Shown one piece after another: positions 45,616 through 54,596 of a DNA stretch of 64,000 nt. The position numbers were made by a program, and so were the translations under genes. The notes beneath the pieces were generated by a model. That model worked only from the letters and a program-made list of their open reading frames with translations, was not told the origin of the DNA and did not search any database. Origin of the DNA: Guillardia theta CCMP2712 (taxonomy: Eukaryota; Protista; Cryptophyta); assembly GCF_000315625.1 (NCBI RefSeq), contig NW_005434503.1:36175-100174 (forward strand), given 5' to 3'. The stretch's first letter is position 1. Each line of letters opens with the position of its first letter.

Positions 45616-48342
45616 TCAGGTCTTTCCTTGTCTCATCGTCAACTTGAAAGTTGAGATAGGGGAATTGAAATGAGAGCCAAAGGAGAAGCACGTCAGTCCC
45701 CCTCCCACGATGTACACGTCCGACCCTCCCCTCCCCTCCCCTCCTTCCTCTTTCTCCTCCTCTTCCTGTCCTCCCCCTTCGCTCTTCCGCGTGCTCCACG
45801 TGCCCCCTGCCCACATGTCTGTCTTGATCGAGCACAGCAAGGGCGCGCTGGAGTGAGGAGGAACGTGAAGCTCTTGCCATGTGAGCCGATCGAGGTCGAG
45901 AGCATAGAGGGGGAAGGAGAGATCCGCCGCCTCCTCCTGGTCAGTGCATCCTCCCCCGACTAGCAGAAACTTCTTGTTCTCTTCTCCTCCTGCCCGAGGG
46001 AGCAAGAGGAGACACGCAGAATGAGCAAACCTCGCGCAGGGCCGCGTCCCCCACGTCGTCAGCTCCTCTGATATGAGACGGACAGTCCTCCTCCCCATGT
46101 CCAGTCCAAGGAGAGAGATCCGATACAGCCTGTCGGAGAGGAGGCGGGTGGTTGGATCGTAACCTCCGAAAAGCAGGAGGTTTCTGCCCCCGTCTGCTGT
46201 GACGGTCCTGCCGATGGCGGAGGAGGGAGGAGTGCTTCCGCTCAGGCTGACCTCACACCAGCTCGCCTGAAGCTCCTCCTTTCCATGCCCCAACTTCAGC
46301 ACCAGCGCCTTCGCTCCACTACCAGCTCCAGCTACAATACCAGCTCCAGTCCCACTACCAGCTCCAGCTCCGGCTCCAGCTCCAGCAGCACTTCCTCTAC
46401 GAGGGCTGATGCCACCGAGCAGCACGACGATCTCGACCTGCTCGTTCTCTGTGGCCAATACGCCTGCTCTGTGCCTGAACGTGGGAGGAGGAGGGTTTCC
46501 AGCGCACAGCATCCTCTTCCACACGCGCTCCTGCGTGTCCAGCACAGCCACATCACTCATCACACTCGCCCGCTCCTCCTCCTTCTCCTCCTCCTCCTCC
46601 GTCTCCACGGGGTTCGGCGGCGAACTCCGTCCCCCGTGCACGACGAGGTAGCGATCGAAGACGGAGCAGGCAGCATGCCAGACGCGCGGGGAGGGTTCGC
46701 CCTTGAGACCAGAGAGGTTCTCGACCATAACAGCCCGTCCTGTCTCGTTGGCGCTGGGGTCAAGAGCAGGAGCCGGGGAGAGAGAAGCCCGCAGGAGTTG
46801 GTTGCTCCTCCCCCCGCTCGACGTTTGACCTCCAAAGATCCACAGCTCGTCCCTTATCTTTACAGACGCATGCCCCCAAAAGCCTCCTGCCCCTGCCCCT
46901 GAATCACCATCGCAAGCATAGATGCAAGACGCGCGGAGGAGTACTTCCTTGTTCGCAGAAGGAGGAGCAACGATTCCTTCCTCCTTCTCGCCTCGCTCGG
47001 CTCCAGCAGCCGAGGCTCTCCACCTGGGAAACGGCTGGACCAGCTGGGACATACTGGCTGAGCTGGTGATGGCCCAGGAGAGGCAGTAGTGCTTGCACTT
47101 CTCTTTCCACTCCTCCTCCTCGTCGAATTTCTCCCTCCTCTCCCCTTCCTCCACGCGCCCTCGCATCAGGACCTGCTCGTAGAGGTACGAGAGGGGGATA
47201 GAGTTTGATTCCTCCCATCCTGTCTCGAGGAGCCTCCGCTGCAGGGCTGCAGCATCAGGGGAGGACGAAATCGCCTTCAGCGCCTGCTCCTTCCTCTTCA
47301 GCGAGCTCGTCATCACCTGCCCGAACAGGTCGCAAGGGCCCGTCTGGTCGTAGGACACCAGAACAGCGTTGGGGAAGCGCTGGCGGACCCACAGGAGGAG
47401 ACGCCTGACCTCCTCCTCCTCGAGGTACTGCAGTACGCACTCCGCCAGCACTAGCGTCGGAGCATGCGAGCTGCAGAAGCGAGTTCGCTCTACTGCCTCG
47501 TCCAACTCCCGCAGCTCCCGCAGGTCTCCTCCCACCAGGATCAAGTCCGAAGTCTCCAGGCTCGTTCCCTCCCCTCCCAAGTCCAGCCGAATCAGCTCGG
47601 GGTGCTTCGTGTACACGTCTTGCAGCTGCTCTAGCCGGTGCTTCAGCATACGGCCGTCTCTTCCTACCTTCCCCAGCTCTTCGCACATGGCGACGGCACA
47701 GGCGAGCGGGTCTTGACGGAGCATGTCGCTCTTCCTCCTGAGCACGGCAGGCAGATCGATCTCCATCCACCTGACGTGGTCCAGCCGCTGCCTCTCCTTA
47801 AAATGCAGGTACGAAGTGTCGTAACCAGCTCCCAGCACCACCACCTGACTGCCCAGCTGCAGCTCAGCCGTCCTGTCGATGAAGCTCGAGATCAGCCCCC
47901 GGACCAGCTCCATCCTCACGAAGTAGCCCCGATTGATCAGCGCCGTCCTCCGGCACAGCCGCGTCTGGTACAGGCCCCTCCTCAGGAAAGCATCCTCCAA
48001 GTAGCCTTCCCGGCACGCCGATGCCTTGCTCATGGTCGAGTCGTCGTTAGTCCTCTCAATGCCGCGGACCCTCTGGGGATCCTGGCTCGCATCAGAGCAC
48101 CGGGGGACGCTCTCCTCTCCCTCCTCCTCCTCCGCTCCCTTGCCGCTCTTCCTCCCTCCCTTGCTCCACCGTATGACGCTCTGGTACCCCTTGTTGATAG
48201 TAGCGACCTTGGGCTCGAACAGCCATGCTCCTCCTCGTAGTTTCAACGGGCGGGCAGGAGGATGCGAAGGAGATTGGATCTGTGCCATGAGCAGGATGGA
48301 GGCGTCTGATATACACAAGAGGAGGAGGACGAGGATCTTCAT
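45616..48342 (-). CDS. TYW4: tRNA wybutosine-synthesising protein 4 (LCMT2): LCM methyltransferase + Kelch repeats, with N-terminal signal peptide
   Basis: TNDDSTMSK, LINRGYFVR, QVVVLGAGYDT, AECVLQYL, FGQVM, FDEEEEW...HY, Kelch repeats (IFGG, VHGGR, LFGG) and terminal GGGLTCFSFGSHFN. Confidence 0.92.
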   Translation of the reverse strand: MKILVLLLLCISDASILLMAQIQSPSHPPARPLKLRGGAWLFEPKVATINKGYQSVIRWSKGGRKSGKGAEEEEGEESVPRCSDASQDPQRVRGIERTNDDSTMSKASACREGYLEDAFLRRGLYQTRLCRRTALINRGYFVRMELVRGLISSFIDRTAELQLGSQVVVLGAGYDTSYLHFKERQRLDHVRWMEIDLPAVLRRKSDMLRQDPLACAVAMCEELGKVGRDGRMLKHRLEQLQDVYTKHPELIRLDLGGEGTSLETSDLILVGGDLRELRELDEAVERTRFCSSHAPTLVLAECVLQYLEEEEVRRLLLWVRQRFPNAVLVSYDQTGPCDLFGQVMTSSLKRKEQALKAISSSPDAAALQRRLLETGWEESNSIPLSYLYEQVLMRGRVEEGERREKFDEEEEWKEKCKHYCLSWAITSSASMSQLVQPFPRWRASAAGAERGEKEEGIVAPPSANKEVLLRASCIYACDGDSGAGAGGFWGHASVKIRDELWIFGGQTSSGGRSNQLLRASLSPAPALDPSANETGRAVMVENLSGLKGEPSPRVWHAACSVFDRYLVVHGGRSSPPNPVETEEEEEKEEERASVMSDVAVLDTQERVWKRMLCAGNPPPPTFRHRAGVLATENEQVEIVVLLGGISPRRGSAAGAGAGAGAGSGTGAGIVAGAGSGAKALVLKLGHGKEELQASWCEVSLSGSTPPSSAIGRTVTADGGRNLLLFGGYDPTTRLLSDRLYRISLLGLDMGRRTVRLISEELTTWGTRPCARFAHSACLLLLPRAGGEENKKFLLVGGGCTDQEEAADLSFPLYALDLDRLTWQELHVPPHSSAPLLCSIKTDMWAGGTWSTRKSEGGGQEEEEKEEGGEGRGGSDVYIVGGGLTCFSFGSHFNSPISTFKLTMRQGKT

Positions 48343-49135
48343 AGCAAACGATGATTGAATTGGTGCAGTGGAAGGGGAGGGAAGGAGAAAGAGTGAGAAT
48401 GGGGGGGGTTGAATGAGCTGGATGAAATGGTAGCAGGACACAGTGACAGCAGAAAGAAGAATAGGGTCAAGTGGATTGAGTATTGAGGAAGGGGGAAAAG
48501 GGAAATCAAGGAGGAGAGGGAAGGGGGGAGGGAGTATAGGGAGGGAGGGAGGAGGTAGTGGAAAGGTAGGAGGAGATGGGAGGAGATGGGAGGAGATGGG
48601 AGGAGATGGGAGAGATGGGAGGAGGTATCAGAAGAGGATAGGAATAGCTTCAGAGTTGAGGAGAAGCGGGGACGAAAGAAGAGGACGGAGGAGGAGGTAG
48701 TGAGGGCAGGTAGCGGATCCCTCCAGCATGGATTTCTGCACGCTGAGAGCTTCGAATAGGTGGGGGTACACAATGTGGGGGTGGGGGTACTGTAAATCAA
48801 GTCAAACACGTACTACTTACTGCGACGATCACCCCTCCTGTAAATTGGTCTTGCTAGTGTGGGTAGGGTAGTCAGAAAAAGGATGGTGGGGTACATAAAG
48901 GCAGCAGGGAAACAAACTCGAGTGAGGGAACTTGAGGCTCGGAGGAGAGAAGGGGGAGGAGGAGAGAAGAAGAAGAAGGAGGAGGAGGAGAAGAAGAAAG
49001 AGACGAAGGAGAAGGAGAAGGAGAAGGAGAGGAGAAGGAGAAGAAGAAGAAACTATATCAAGAGTTAGAATGGTGCAAGACAAACGGAGAAGGGACGCGA
49101 GAAGAACAAGAGAGGAAGGGCATTGACGGATTTAC

Positions 49136-50940
49136 ATGATGCTGTGGTACAGCAGCATGCCAAGGTTCGCCATATTCAAGCCTCATCGTCCGAGTTTCGT
49201 CTCTCTCCATGCTCAGCTGCGCAGGCAGGTCTGCCGTAACCTACAGACCTCAGGGAGGAGCAGACTTCTACATCCCCTCGTGCTGCCGCAATGGCGAAGA
49301 CCGTGCGACCACGCCGGAGCAGCAGGAGCAGGATCCGGGGCAGGAGCAGGAGCAGGAGCAAGGCTGCTATCAAGCAGCCCCCCGCAGAACTTCTGGCATG
49401 ATCGCACTTTCCTCGGGGCAGCAGCAGCGATGTCACTGGCTGTGTCCTCAAGCAACGTGCTCGTGCTCTACCCGATCAACGACTGGTTCACTGCTGGGAC
49501 GCTCACCTACCCCGTCACCTTCCTCATCACTGACGTCTGCAACAAGTTCCTGGGCAAGGCAGCGGCTGACCGAGTCGTCATGTCCGGCTTCGCCCTTGCC
49601 ATGCCTATCTCCTTCTTCCTCTCCGGCCCTCGGATCGCCATCGCCTCTGGCACCGCATACCTGACCTCTCAGCTCCTCGACGTTCGGATCTTCGATCGCC
49701 TCCGCCATCGCACATGGTGGGTGGCGCCGCTGGTCTCGACGCTGGTGGGGTCAGCGGTGGACAGCTCGCTCTTCGTCACCATCGCCTTCCTCGGGGAGCC
49801 GGTGCCATGGGTGACGTGGGGGATCGGCGACTTCGCCATGAAGGTCATGATGGCGCTGGTCATGCTGATGCCCTTCAAGGCCATCACTGGCAGCATCATG
49901 CGCAGCAGCAGACGCTCCTGGCATCTGCCGATCAGCAGGAGTCTTGGGAGGGGCGTGGGGAACTTGCTGTCAGAGTTGATCAGGGTAGGGGGCAAGCTGT
50001 CTCCTGCCCTCCCCACGGCTGGTCAGGAGCAGGTGGGGACGAGGCGGTGGGCTCCGAGCTGGATGTCTGGGGAGAGGCGCGTGTCGTCGAGGAGCTTCAA
50101 GATGTTCCATCCTACTGTGGACTGGCAGGCGGTGGAGGACGACCATGTGCTGCCTCCTGGGCTGGAGATCAGGATGGATGTGAGCAGCGGGCTGAGGTAC
50201 GCGCGTCTTCCTCCTCAGGTGAGATGGGAGGGGTGGGACCAGCATGTCGTGACGAGAGTGCAGGAGGAGGTTGTACAGAGAAGTCCGCGCGAGGAAGAGG
50301 AGGAGGTGAGTCCGAAAGAGCAGGCCCCGGCTCAGAGGGTTGTGGACGTTGAGGTGAAGGAAGAGAAAGAGGAGGAGCTTGAATATGTTCCGCACGTCAA
50401 CGTCGATGATTTTGACTACGAGCTGCCCGCTGAAAGGATCGCCGTCCGCCCTTGCAACCCGCGGGATCAGTCGAAGCTCCTGCTCTGTGTGGGAGACGAG
50501 CTTCTTCCTCGCTTCGCTTCTCTTCCTCCTCCCTCCCTCTCTGTCAACGGCTCGCACATCTTCGACCTCAACTTTATCGACGTTCCGGACTTCTTCCCCA
50601 AGAGCTCTCTCCTCCTCCTCAACGACTCCAAGGTGATCGCCGCCCGAATTCCCTGTAGCAAGAAGGACACAGGGGGAAGGTCTGAAGTCTTCCTGCTCTC
50701 TCCTCTCCTCCCCAGCAAGGATCCTCCTCAGGCTCTCCGAGCGAGCTCGGGGGAGGCTGTGTGGAAGACGATGATCCGTGGGAAGCGGATTGAGGTTGGC
50801 GACATCCTCGTGAGCCAGTCCATGGGAACCGACGGCACCAACAGCGCGCAAGTTCATGTGGAGGCTGAGGTGTTGGAGAAGGATGGAGCAGACGCTGTGG
50901 TCAGACTCCGCTGGTTCAATGCGAGCTCCAGAGCGCAAGG

Positions 50941-50982
<42 letters not shown>

Positions 50983-52628
50983 ATCGTCTCCTCTCTTGCT
51001 GCATGAGGTGCTGAAGCAGATCGGGCGCGTTCCTCTCCCTCCATACATCAAGCGCGAGGCGGACAAGGAGGACCTTGTGACCTACCAGACCAGCCACGCG
51101 CAGCACGAGGGGAGTGTAGCTGCTCCGACCGCTGGCCTGCACTTCAGCGAGAGGGTGATGAGACGGATGTCCGAGCAGGGGACGGAAACTCTGCGGGTGA
51201 CGCTGCATGTTGGTGCCGGGACGTTCAAGCCAGTGGAAGCGAATGACGTGGCCAATCACGAGATGCACCACGAGCGAATCATCGTCAACGTCAGCACAAT
51301 GAATGGAATCAAGCAGGTCCTCTCTCCTCTCTCCTCTCCTTCCCTCCCCTCCGATCCCCTCCCCTTCCCTCCGATCCTCTCTTCTCTGCTCTCCTCTCCT
51401 CTGCTCTCCTCTCCTCTCCTCTCCTCTCCTCTCCTCTGCTCTCCTCTCCTCTCCTCTCCTCTCCTCTCCTCTCCTCTCCTCTCCTCTCCTTCCCTCCCCT
51501 CCGATCCCCTCTCCTCTCCTCTGCTCTCCCCTCCTTCTTGTCAGTTTCTTCCCGCCTTTCTACTCGTCTACTTTTCCTCTCTGGTTCTCTTCTCTATCTT
51601 TTCTTTGCCCTGTCTTGTCTTCTTACTTGTCTTGTCCTCCCGCCTCCATCTCCCCATCTCTTCTCGTTTCCTTTGGGGTGATGCTCTCCTCCCAAGGCGT
51701 TGGAATCCAACAAGCTCATCGTTCCTGTTGGCACCACAACCGTTCGAACCATCGAGTCCCTATACTGGTTGTCCTCCCCTATGCTGCCCGCCCCTCCCGA
51801 CTTCTCTTCTCGCTAACCCTCTCTCTTCTCCTCTTCCTCCCCTCCCCATCCACTCCTCGCTTCCTTCCTGACCCCCCCCCCCCCTTCGGTCCCCCCCTCC
51901 CGACCCCTCTCTTCCCTCTCCCCCTTTTTTCTCTCCCCTCCCCTCCTCTTCCCTCCTCTCTCTCCCCACCCTCCCTTATCCCCCACAACTCACACCTTCT
52001 CTTCTTTGCGCTTCTCCTCCATTCTCACCGTCTTGCAGGTGGGGCGTTAAAGTGCTGCAGGGCGAAGTGGAGGAGGATGCGAAGGAGATTTCAGTGTCTC
52101 AATGGGATCCGTACAGGCTGGAGAGGAAGGTGGGGGGATGGGACAGACTGCCATCAGCACAAGAGTCGCTAGATGCTGTGCTCTCATGGAACAGACATGT
52201 CAATCTCGGAGACTTTGTCGTCGGAGAAACGCAGCTCATTATCGTTCCCGGATATCGGTGAAGTTGGACCTGAGCTCTGCTGATGGAGACGGCTGACTTC
52301 ATTCTTCTTGCTCAGTTTCGCGTTGTGCGACCTGCTCTTCACAAACTCACACCAGCCACGATCGACCCTGCTGATGCTGGTAGGAGGATAGGAGTTTGCT
52401 TCTTTCAACCCTCTTGTTGATATCTCCTAATTTTCAGGTCTCGGCATTCGTGGGAGGACAAGACAAACTAAAGAGCTTGTACCAACACGCCCTGCACAAC
52501 AACTTCAGGTAAATCTTCACTTTCGCTCCTTCACCAGTTCCCGACGCGGTTGCAGGTTTTTAAGTTATGGAGATAGCATGCTCCTCTCGTGTCCTCCATC
52601 AGCAAAACTGCCACACAGGAGCCAATAG
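49136..52628 (+). CDS. queA: Fusion of queuosine-precursor transporter (YhhQ/DUF165) and SAM:tRNA ribosyltransferase-isomerase QueA, with presequence-like leader
   Basis: One frame 49136-~51317 carries YhhQ motifs (SSNVLV, YPVTFLITDV, RIAIASGTAYLTSQLLDVRIF, VSTLVGSAVDSSLF, IGDFAMK) and QueA motifs (FDYELPAERIA, RDQSKLL, NDSKVIAAR, PLPPYIKR, YQT, GSVAAPTAGLHF, VTLHVGAGTFKPV). Spliced exons add VGTTTVRTIES, IVPGY, TNSHQPRSTLLML and RFLSYGDSMLL. Confidence 0.92.
51320..51535. repeat. Intronic (CTCCT)n polypyrimidine tract
   Basis: Directly visible; extends the called ORF spuriously to 51871. Confidence 0.9.
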
Positions 52629-52835
52629 CCTTGAAAATGATTTGCTCTTGTTTTGATTCGTCCATACAAAGTGATCGTATCAAGACTGTCAAAATAGGTG
52701 TCTGCAGGAGTCGTATTTGCAATCAATTTTATCAGAGAAAAGTAGGATTATTTCCTCAGGCGAACCCAGAAGACGATTTCCGATGGTCATGAATGATTTT
52801 TTGGCCCAATCTAAACATGAAAACAAAACTAGTAT

Positions 52836-54596
52836 CTAAATATGAAAACAAATACACTTGGATGCAACAACTAGGGTTGCTGTGACTATTCCGTAGAAGA
52901 TAGAATGGGAGTAGTGCGGACGATCCTGAGATCCTTCGATTTCTTCGGCTGAATACGTAGATCTTTCTGTCGGAAAGCTGATATTCTGAGGACCCGGTGA
53001 GAAGCTGGAATTCTTGACATGCTCAACCGGCATCAAGTCCTCACTGAAACACTTGTGGCTAGTGGAAATGTTCATTTTTGAACCAGATGTTTCGCGAAGG
53101 GACTTTGGCAACTTGTGAGTCGCAGCAAACACTTGGGGTCTTGAAAGCCTGTATCTCGAGGAGTTTGGGAAGGAGCTACATTGAAGCAGGTCATTGTCGA
53201 TTCTTTGCAACTGAGAGTCAAGGATCATCGGTCACGAACCAATGAATCAGATACTATCATCAAAGAAATGAAAGCAAGTTGACCTTTGTGCTGCTCGCTC
53301 TTGGTCTAGCGGCGGGTTCAAAGACAAGAATTTTCAAGAATGCCTGTTCAAACATGATGTTGCTGACTAACATGACAAAAACTCGTATCATCTGAGTCTG
53401 CTGGATAAAACTCTTAACTTTGCTCAAGGTATGTTTCTTCGTGTGCCCCTCGAATGTAGCACCTTTCTGCTGAAAACCATGTGCATCAGCTTTTTCTTCA
53501 AATAATTGCACAGGGTAGGAGCTTCCAGATTTGAAGATCTGTTCGCAAAATTTAGATTTCTTTCACAACTCTTTGCTTATCTGACTTACCTGTTCTTCAC
53601 TGGATTGAGTTGTCCTGCAGACAGTAGAACGTTTTGGAATAAAGTTGGCAACTTCAATGTTGTTAATTATCTCGCATGAACAAATCTTATTCAAACACCT
53701 TTGGTATGTTTCTTTCCTTTAAAGCCAAAGTGAAACTTGCCAGAAAGTGAGTAGACTTGACGTTTAAATCAAGAAATGGCGTACTGAGATCGAACTGACT
53801 TCACACGAAAAGATCGCTTTGCGAAAGAGTTGAATCCAAAATCCTTTGGTATTGAAAATCATGAAAAGCATCTCTTTCTTCATTACTTCTGGCAGCTTGT
53901 GAAGCATATCAAAGAGTTCTTGGATAAGAAGATGTATGTTTCTAGAAAGAGCTTCATCACAATTAGGATCGATTTCTCCATAGTCCTACCATAATCATTG
54001 TCAACCGTCAAAAAATGTTTTGCTACAAAACGTACATAATTTGATTCATCACCACCTTTCATTTCCCTTTTCATCAAAGTGTTATGATCAAAATCAAAAG
54101 TGAAGGAAAGAAAATACCTTTGTAAAACAGACTCTGTGCTTTCCGAGCTTTGAATCATTTCCGTTTGACCGATTTGGTTCCGTGCGTGATAAACAGCAAG
54201 ATAAGAACTTTTCTTTTCCTTGCTACCATGATTGTGCAACAGCATCCCAACAGATTGCTTAGCATAATCCATGCCTTTTGTGACTACTTTGATTCTTGGA
54301 ATTTTTGTTTCCACTTTCAGAGCTAAGCTAACGTCAAAAGCAAGATGTTGTTTGGTGCCACATTTCTCCGAAGTGTCTTGCCTCTCACAGACTTTGCTTT
54401 GTCCCAATCTCCTTCCAACCCCTTTCTTTTGAGGCTGTGCAATAACTTTACTCTGATTGATCGGTCTCATCAGCGCATAGCTTTTGCCACTCTTGTCCTT
54501 CCTCCCATTCTCTGCTGCTTCGCCGGTTTTGTCGGCACCTCGCATGCCACAAACTTTTTTTGCGCGCGCTTCCTTTCGGCGTAGGGGTCGGGTCAT
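52836..54596 (-). CDS. Hypothetical protein, probably multi-exon
   Basis: A 237-aa ORF (53883-54596) plus further minus-strand ORF blocks and gtaag donors; no motif recognised. Confidence 0.4.

Follow-up and report, generated by a model that had tools for sequence, protein, structure and literature searches.

In the nuclear genome of the cryptophyte alga Guillardia theta CCMP2712, a single gene encodes a queuosine-precursor transporter of the YhhQ family joined to QueA, an enzyme of queuosine (Q) synthesis. The gene lies within a 64,000-nt window of contig NW_005434503.1, and all coordinates given here are positions within that window. The YhhQ-QueA fusion is one real, expressed nuclear gene, which occupies 49136-52628 on the forward strand and, once spliced, specifies a product of 877 amino acids (aa) that ends at a TAG stop codon. 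To our knowledge, eukaryotes are generally held to rely on the salvage of queuine. The explanation of the locus as a whole that we favour, with moderate confidence, is a mitochondrial protein in which an importer of preQ1 is fused to QueA.

The unspliced open reading frame (ORF) extends from 49136 to 51871 (+) and is 911 aa long. Pfam profiles for the transporter (Vut_1) and for the enzyme (Queuosine_synth) match within this one frame, both above their cut-offs, and the Pfam and NCBIfam results together confirm the claim of a preliminary description of this stretch, made from the letters alone, that one stop-free frame joins a YhhQ domain to QueA. A stop codon stands in frame just 5′ of the ATG at 49136. 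Over the 507 nt that separate the two domains, the frame of the gene has no stop codon, while the other frames have 8 and 2; when shuffled, this stretch stays open in only 32 of 20,000 trials (approximately 0.16 %), so that an open linker frame is unlikely to have arisen by chance.

Four RNA runs (X1, X2, X13 and X20) were placed on the region 48000-53500, X1 and X2 being from different studies. In both X1 and X2, one contig consists of 49058-50215 joined to 50261 onward, reaching 50603 in X1 and 50931 in X2; the leader, the YhhQ domain, the linker and the N-terminal half of QueA are therefore carried on a single spliced contig. The RNA contigs extend at least 44-53 nt 5′ of 49058. A second contig in each of these runs comprises 50990-51314, 72 nt of the third exon and 52038-52256, and continues to 52759 or 52870, with joints at 51766/52038, 52256/52315, 52378/52437 and 52505/52553. 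Only a masked CAG repeat (50932-50989) separates the two contigs. Low-complexity tracts, namely this repeat and a CT-rich tract at 51316-51537 of the second intron, break short-read transcript assemblies, and both were masked when the runs were placed. Run X13 is unspliced and DNA-like, and the raw-read run X20 gave just nine reads, too few to define transcript ends. Many public runs contain about 0.72 of the words sampled from the stretch, a value near its exon share of about 0.75.

The exon model built from the RNA-contig joints has seven coding exons (49136-50218, 50264-51316, 51697-51767, 52039-52257, 52316-52379, 52438-52508 and 52556-52628, all +) and six introns, every one of which begins with GT and ends with AG. 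The preliminary description had counted five GT-AG introns, all within the C-terminal half of QueA. Those five all have GT..AG ends, four of them being seen as RNA joints and the fifth (51317-51696) being implied, and the total becomes six with an additional intron, 50219-50263, in the linker. As this intron is 45 nt long, in frame and free of stops, its splicing (a joint in both X1 and X2) does not remove the linker frame; its retention would insert 15 aa and leave the protein otherwise unbroken. The proposal that this is a resident nuclear gene is thus supported, since the gene is spliced and expressed and both domains are found on one transcript contig. Bacterial contamination was considered and rejected, because the gene has six spliceosomal introns and its contig, a nuclear one, is 100 kb or more in length.

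The transporter domain (aa 92-252; 49409-49891, +) was delimited by Pfam, NCBIfam, alignments and an AlphaFold2 (AF2) model. Vut_1 (PF02592) matched with an E-value of 2.1e-28 and 100.1 bits against a cut-off of 27.2, and the NCBIfam model of queuosine precursor transporters, TIGR00697, with 91-97 bits against a cut-off of 50.95. The domain can be aligned over its whole length with sets of 21 and 36 homologues, retains every invariant column and belongs to a short subfamily of approximately 175 aa. YhhQ of Escherichia coli has 221 aa, and the idea of a truncated YhhQ was rejected because the end-to-end alignment identifies the shortfall of about 40 aa as a trait of the subfamily. The AF2 model, made from 37 sequences, consists of six long helices with a predicted local distance difference test (pLDDT) value above 90. 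The complete YhhQ/DUF165 domain that had been placed at about 49410-49880 is thereby confirmed. Searches of the Protein Data Bank (PDB) by sequence found no YhhQ structure. The AF2 model superposes on the S-components of energy-coupling factor (ECF) vitamin transporters BioY, RibU, ThiT and PanT with target-normalized TM-scores of 0.5-0.7 and a probability near 1, although these same Foldseek matches have E-values of just 0.02-0.7 and a sequence identity of 10-20 %; the likeness is a predicted one of fold, and the comparison applies at the level of the S-component.

Lysine and arginine are concentrated in the N-tail, in loops 2-3 and 4-5 and in the C-tail of the YhhQ domain, and by the positive-inside rule both of its ends are predicted to face the side equivalent to the bacterial cytoplasm. 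Both ends of ECF S-components are cytoplasmic. We infer that the substrate is preQ1 from the fusion to QueA and from the absence of QueF. The bacterial queuosine-precursor transporters (QPTR/YhhQ) belong to the same family according to Pfam and NCBIfam and have six helices, as does the Guillardia protein, which differs from them in belonging to the short subfamily and in bearing an 88-aa leader and a C-terminal enzyme. E. coli YhhQ (COG1738, PF02592) is an importer of preQ0 and preQ1 (PMC5372724).

The QueA domain begins at about aa 408 (50402), as the preliminary description had proposed with its estimate of 50400, and is full length, without terminal truncation. The Queuosine_synth profile (PF02547) matches at 2e-56 with 192 bits against a cut-off of 25, and structures in the PDB match at 1e-28 to 1e-31. 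Against the NCBIfam QueA equivalogs TIGR00113 and NF001140, the piece encoded by the first exon alone scores 207 (cut-off 324) and 168 (cut-off 267), and a complete related cryptophyte QueA, P0004, falls just below the same bacterial equivalog cut-offs with 318.8 and 250. Of the 83 positions at which 112 bacterial QueA sequences are at least 95 % conserved, the Guillardia domain retains 81. The domain is homologous over its full length to bacterial QueA (PDB 1YY3, 1VKY and 1WDI), from which it differs by two inserts, one of them poly-Gln (a CAG run at 50932-50989 encodes 12 Gln), by one 6-residue deletion and by a predicted N-terminal membrane tether. It is predicted to be a tRNA preQ1(34) S-adenosylmethionine ribosyltransferase-isomerase.

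The fusion is not peculiar to Guillardia. Two eukaryotic metagenome contigs of uncultured relatives carry uninterrupted genomic ORFs, P0001 (852 aa) and P0002 (792 aa), with leader, YhhQ, linker and QueA in the same order; they show 49 % identity, run into an intron at the position of Guillardia intron 4 and represent a 90 %-identity cluster of 47 members. In a third sequence, P0003 (58 % identity over the aligned N-part), leader, YhhQ, linker and the start of QueA lie in one ORF, with further QueA exons 3′ on the same contig. For the N-part, which comprises the leader, the YhhQ domain and the linker motif, the nearest relative is P0121 of Hanusia phi (EukProt; Geminigeraceae), with 86 % identity over that part and the same start, MLW. 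Its model comprises the N-part only and ends by reading into the same linker intron, the position of which is shared. P0004 contains QueA only, on a contig that is open at its 5′ end and breaks in low complexity, so that a fusion is neither seen nor excluded there.

A maximum-likelihood tree of the YhhQ domain groups the seven cryptophyte-type rows in one clade, with a Shimodaira-Hasegawa-like approximate likelihood ratio test (SH-aLRT) value of 97. A wider clade of 15 rows (SH-aLRT 95), which adds other proteins bearing presequence-like N-extensions, is nested among alphaproteobacterial-type sequences; the label ‘eukaryote-like’ for the rows of this wider clade is based on their N-extensions and on neighbouring genes of eukaryotic type, for example a PWWP gene. 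The other eukaryotic YhhQ proteins of this clade are standalone and are not beside QueA. In the compact eukaryotic metagenome genome of contigs L047 and L048, for example, a standalone YhhQ (P0413) with an N-extension of approximately 130 aa lies between genes for an ABC1/UbiB kinase and a PWWP-domain protein, and QueA is not adjacent. The best named bacterial matches of the YhhQ half are alphaproteobacterial (Rhodospirillales, Kiloniellaceae, Marivibrio and Hyphomicrobiales; 56-62 % identity), whereas those of the QueA half are from Bacteroidota and Kapabacteria (about 40 %). Because the best matches differ, the two halves seem to have different sources, and the fusion apparently arose within eukaryotes, in cryptophytes. 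In the two alphaproteobacterial loci inspected, yhhQ was not beside queA.

The location of the protein is suggested by its leader (aa 1-88; 49136-49399, +), which was delimited by residue composition and lacks the hydrophobic core of a signal peptide. The leader contains ten Arg and one Lys against one Asp and no Glu; in its first 60 aa there are ten basic residues against one acidic, and the best 10-aa hydropathy is 0.65. These counts support the earlier characterization of the leader as Arg-rich, acid-poor and presequence-like. The RLLSS motif also noted there is present in Guillardia and only partly conserved, as Hanusia has RLLMS. Cryptophyte plastid proteins enter via the endoplasmic reticulum and start with a signal peptide. 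The genome supplied controls in the form of 23 matches to the cryptophyte phycoerythrin-alpha family, the pre-proteins of which open with a signal peptide (MRSVAFAALIGSAAAF) and reach a best 10-aa hydropathy of 2.1-2.2. Leaders of a character similar to that of Guillardia, though not of conserved sequence, are found in P0121, P0001, P0003, P0123 and in the standalone eukaryotic YhhQ proteins. Since the leader lacks the signal peptide of plastid pre-proteins, and since N-in/C-in topology would put QueA in the matrix, the best reading of composition and topology is that the protein is probably mitochondrial and lies in the inner membrane, its QueA part being on the matrix side.

A search of the genome by profile (87,145,349 bp in 669 contigs) provided the partners that such a protein would require; exon-split genes can escape detection in a search of this kind. 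QueA and Vut_1 are each single-copy, and both occur in the fusion gene only. TGT-family matches were found at four places, all on contigs other than that of the fusion gene. One bacterial-like TGT, at C135:375-1082 (−), matches TIGR00430 at 9e-40 over profile positions 1-133 and is cut by the start of its contig. The second, at C226:37300-38800 (+) and on the near-identical contig C496, has one intron with coding capacity for poly-Asp; no middle exons of this gene were recovered, and a second profile search with TIGR00430 added none. A eukaryote-type TGT lies on C11 and a further TGT-family gene on C25, and when the TGT loci were scanned with a GGLSGGE expression, the eukaryote-type C11 gene alone matched. 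QueG is encoded at C55:158202-159222 (−; 1e-38) by a gene with at least one intron, an internal assembly gap of Ns and a poly-Gly run after the leader; its N-terminus reads MLSRRIAG (MLSRRIAGIVAPW) and is presequence-like. QNG1 is also present.

With two bacterial-like TGT genes and QueG in the genome, the partner enzymes of the bacterial-style late Q pathway postulated earlier are present, although QueH, for which a search had also been recommended, was not found. QueF (PF14489) and E. coli-type QueE (TIGR04322) were likewise not found by the genome search, which may miss exon-split genes. An importer of the precursor makes sense where QueF, QueE and QueH are not found. A gene of the PTPS/QueD family is present, as is a QueC-like single-exon gene (C20:534556-535338; 260 aa) with an Arg-rich N-extension, which scores 125 bits on the Pfam QueC profile and 102 bits against the TIGR00364 equivalog cut-off of 150.

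In the model that we consider most likely, the fusion protein would enter the mitochondrion and become embedded in the inner membrane, the transporter having both of its termini on the matrix side and QueA remaining tethered to the membrane in the matrix. The transporter would carry preQ1 into the matrix, where a separately encoded bacterial-like TGT would place it at G34 of the mitochondrial tRNAs for Asp, Asn, His and Tyr. The tethered QueA would then turn preQ1-tRNA into epoxyqueuosine-tRNA, which QueG would reduce to queuosine. Joined in one protein, importer and enzyme would be expressed and targeted together in a 1:1 ratio, and might form a membrane-bound complex. The substrates of QueA are preQ1-tRNA and S-adenosylmethionine, not the free base, and the fusion therefore cannot channel substrate directly; the suggestion of the preliminary description that uptake is coupled to modification holds for co-expression and co-location but not for direct channelling.

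Several points weigh against a mitochondrial preQ1 importer fused to QueA. QueA would make no kinetic gain from an adjoining importer of the base. The RNA support consists of assembled contigs, not single molecules, and these contigs break at the CAG repeat. The argument from the leader is one of residue composition only. The substrate pocket of the bacterial-like TGTs is unreadable, one copy being cut by a contig end and the other lacking its middle exons, and the QueC-like gene is not explained by a pure salvage model. Lastly, it has been argued that bacterial-like TGTs may accept queuine (PMC12301720), and QueA would then be dispensable.

One alternative, which we consider unlikely, is that the protein resides in the plasma membrane or an endomembrane with QueA in the cytosol, where the eukaryotic TGT would put environmental preQ1 on cytosolic tRNAs that are matured in place. 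The first helix of a multi-pass protein can act as a signal anchor, and the predicted C-in topology would indeed place QueA in the cytosol; the eukaryotic TGT is reported to be able to incorporate preQ1 derivatives in vivo (PMC9561289). However, among homologues the long, Arg-rich and acid-poor leader is conserved in character and not in sequence, as is typical of targeting peptides, and the N-terminus of QueG is of the same kind. Cytosolic Q is already supplied by QNG1 and the eukaryote-type TGT, and the orthologues in Chloropicon are predicted to be mitochondrial (PMC12301720).

An improbable variant of the mitochondrial model holds that fusion serves co-expression and co-import only, the linker being cut after import to free a membrane transporter and a soluble matrix QueA. 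The linker, of approximately 150 aa, is mostly variable, differs in length among species and is of low AF2 confidence (pLDDT below 50 at aa ~285-318), and its low complexity would suit such a fate, as would the existence of standalone proteins of the same YhhQ clade in other eukaryotes. Against cleavage, no cleavage motif was identified in the linker, and a 39-aa motif within it is strongly conserved, which suggests that the linker has a role.

The motif (aa 321-359; 50096-50212, +), defined by an alignment of cryptophyte sequences and by AF2, reads F.MF.PT..WQ.VE.DHVLP.GLEI..DV..G.R.ARLP. In four cryptophyte sequences, 23 of 44 columns are invariant, and in the AF2 model the motif forms a small beta unit (pLDDT about 90). 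It is flanked by a basic, poorly conserved part of the linker (aa 253-320; 49892-50095, +), recognized by alignment and residue counts, and by an acidic, variable part (50264-50401, +). A Pfam search at E-values up to 10 gave no match to the motif; a feature search of the ESM Atlas returned scores of 0.84 or less, none significant; and a profile search of the PDB gave only WW-like LPPGxE matches, not significant at E-values of 0.4-0.9. A possible likeness to the N-terminal motif of SIL1 was given no weight. A tentative and rather unlikely extension of the mitochondrial model is that the motif docks a bacterial-like TGT or tRNA, and that the fusion thereby nucleates a membrane-bound queuosine-synthesis complex where preQ1 enters the mitochondrial matrix.

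It is decidedly improbable that the same fused protein works on the plastid-encoded tRNAs with GUN anticodons, whether in the complex plastid only or through dual targeting. Plastids descend from bacteria and have genes for such tRNAs, and two bacterial-like TGT paralogues beside one QueA and one QueG would fit two organelles that share the late enzymes. Nonetheless, the signal peptide that is present in the phycoerythrin-alpha controls is absent from the leaders of Guillardia, P0001, P0003, P0121 and P0123.

We give very little credence to the possibility that the transporter carries queuine or another base, with QueA idle or otherwise employed. The QPTR of Chlamydia trachomatis does carry queuine and not preQ1 (PMC11130926), and the bacterial-like TGTs may accept queuine (PMC12301720). 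Yet a QueA that was idle would hardly be expected to keep 81 of its 83 near-invariant columns, and its retention along with QueG would be pointless in a queuine route. A queuine importer would moreover have no use for QueA, so that the gene fusion as such links the transporter with the preQ1 branch and argues that the eukaryotic YhhQ works on preQ1 rather than in a queuine route.

Least credible of all is an artefact in which the assembler merged the transcripts of two adjacent genes across a frame open by chance: the RNA evidence is at contig level, with nine raw reads in X20, but the spanning contig is itself spliced and was seen in two studies, the linker would be open by chance in about 0.16 % of cases, the fusion ORF is conserved in the genomic DNA of other species, and no Met with a leader precedes QueA.

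The remaining features of the locus complete the gene model. All lie on the forward strand. The second exon encodes the first two thirds of the QueA domain with the poly-Gln insert (50402-51316; Queuosine_synth profile positions 1-225 of 322). It is followed by intron 2 (51317-51696; 380 nt), which is CT-rich, of low complexity and implied by the RNA-contig coordinates, and by the third exon, 51697-51767 (ALESNKLIVPVGTTTVRTIESLYW), which matches Pfam profile positions 229-247 and is present in the RNA contigs. Intron 3 (51768-52038; 271 nt), intron 4 (52258-52315; 58 nt), intron 5 (52380-52437; 58 nt) and intron 6 (52509-52555; 47 nt) are each seen as a joint in X1 and X2. Between them lie QueA exons 4 (52039-52257; RNA contigs and alignment), 5 (52316-52379; RNA contigs) and 6 (52438-52508; RNA contigs). 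The last coding exon (52556-52628), which opens with FLSYGDSMLL and carries the TAG codon at 52626-52628, aligns to the C-termini of P0004 and of bacterial QueA. The 3′ untranslated region extends over 52629-52870, the RNA contigs ending at 52759 (X1) and 52870 (X2).

In the 5′ untranslated region there is an upstream ORF of 18 codons (49071-49127, +) in a different frame, which ends 9 nt before the main ATG. It has a strong start context, agaATGg, whereas that of the main ATG is weak, and it could throttle translation or shift the start site of the fusion gene. The divergent neighbour (45616-48441, −) combines an LCM methyltransferase domain with a Kelch propeller (Pfam), the architecture of TYW4/LCMT2, tRNA wybutosine-synthesizing protein 4. 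Two tRNA-modification genes, TYW4/LCMT2-like and YhhQ-QueA, thus stand head to head across a purine-rich spacer of approximately 700 bp.

The nearest published system is that of the green alga Chloropicon, in which YhhQ, a bacterial-like TGT, QueA and QueG are all predicted to be mitochondrial and to form a pathway, as proposed in 2025 (PMC12301720). The YhhQ and QueA genes are neighbours in C. primus and are on different chromosomes in C. roscoffensis (PMC12301720). A mitochondrial bacterial-like TGT, QueA and QueG have also been reported in red algae (PMC12301720), and the statement in the preliminary description that eukaryotes do not need QueA is therefore out of date. Chloropicon shares with Guillardia the same four bacterial-type components, which in Chloropicon accompany a cytosolic route of QNG1 and QTRT1/2, and the two genes are physically linked in C. 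primus; the difference is that the Chloropicon genes are separate, whereas in Guillardia, of the cryptophyte lineage, both are part of a single spliced ORF that includes the conserved linker motif. The Chloropicon study did not decide between preQ1 and queuine as the substrate of the bacterial-like TGT, and its BlastP search with YhhQ returned bacteria only, with no other eukaryotic YhhQ found (PMC12301720). COG1738 had earlier been noted in just four eukaryotic genomes (PMC5372724), and eukaryotic queuosine-precursor transporters have been described as largely unknown (PMC11130926).

Bacterial fusion proteins of QPTR and bacterial TGT (bTGT) have been described (PMC11130926), and these resemble the Guillardia protein in joining a queuosine-precursor transporter to an enzyme of the queuosine pathway. 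In the bacterial proteins the partner uses the imported base and channelling is plausible, whereas the Guillardia partner, QueA and not TGT, acts one step later, on tRNA, and does not consume the imported base as the enzyme of a transporter-TGT fusion does. The fusion search of that study covered bTGT partners only and has no bearing on QPTR-QueA fusions (PMC11130926). A YhhQ-QueA fusion was not mentioned in the literature that we searched, in line with the earlier impression that it was undescribed; InterPro and UniProt architectures lay outside that search, and database architectures may show the fusion uncommented.

Overall, the idea of the pathway has already been published for green algae, and the interpretation first placed on this sequence is partly supported. 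Within the literature searched, the new elements appear to be a YhhQ-QueA fusion that is conserved in cryptophytes, the conserved motif in its linker, the grouping of presequence-bearing eukaryotic YhhQ proteins in one clade, and the argument for the preQ1 branch. The gene extends the proposed mitochondrial preQ1 pathway from Chloropicon to cryptophytes, assigns the presequence-bearing eukaryotic YhhQ proteins to one clade nested among alphaproteobacterial-type sequences, connects the transporter to the preQ1 branch by gene fusion and offers a single cloneable protein with which organellar Q synthesis can be tested. If the docking role proposed for the linker motif is true, the fusion would represent a transporter-anchored tRNA-modification metabolon inside an organelle, and cryptophytes would consume bacterial preQ1 in the sea directly.

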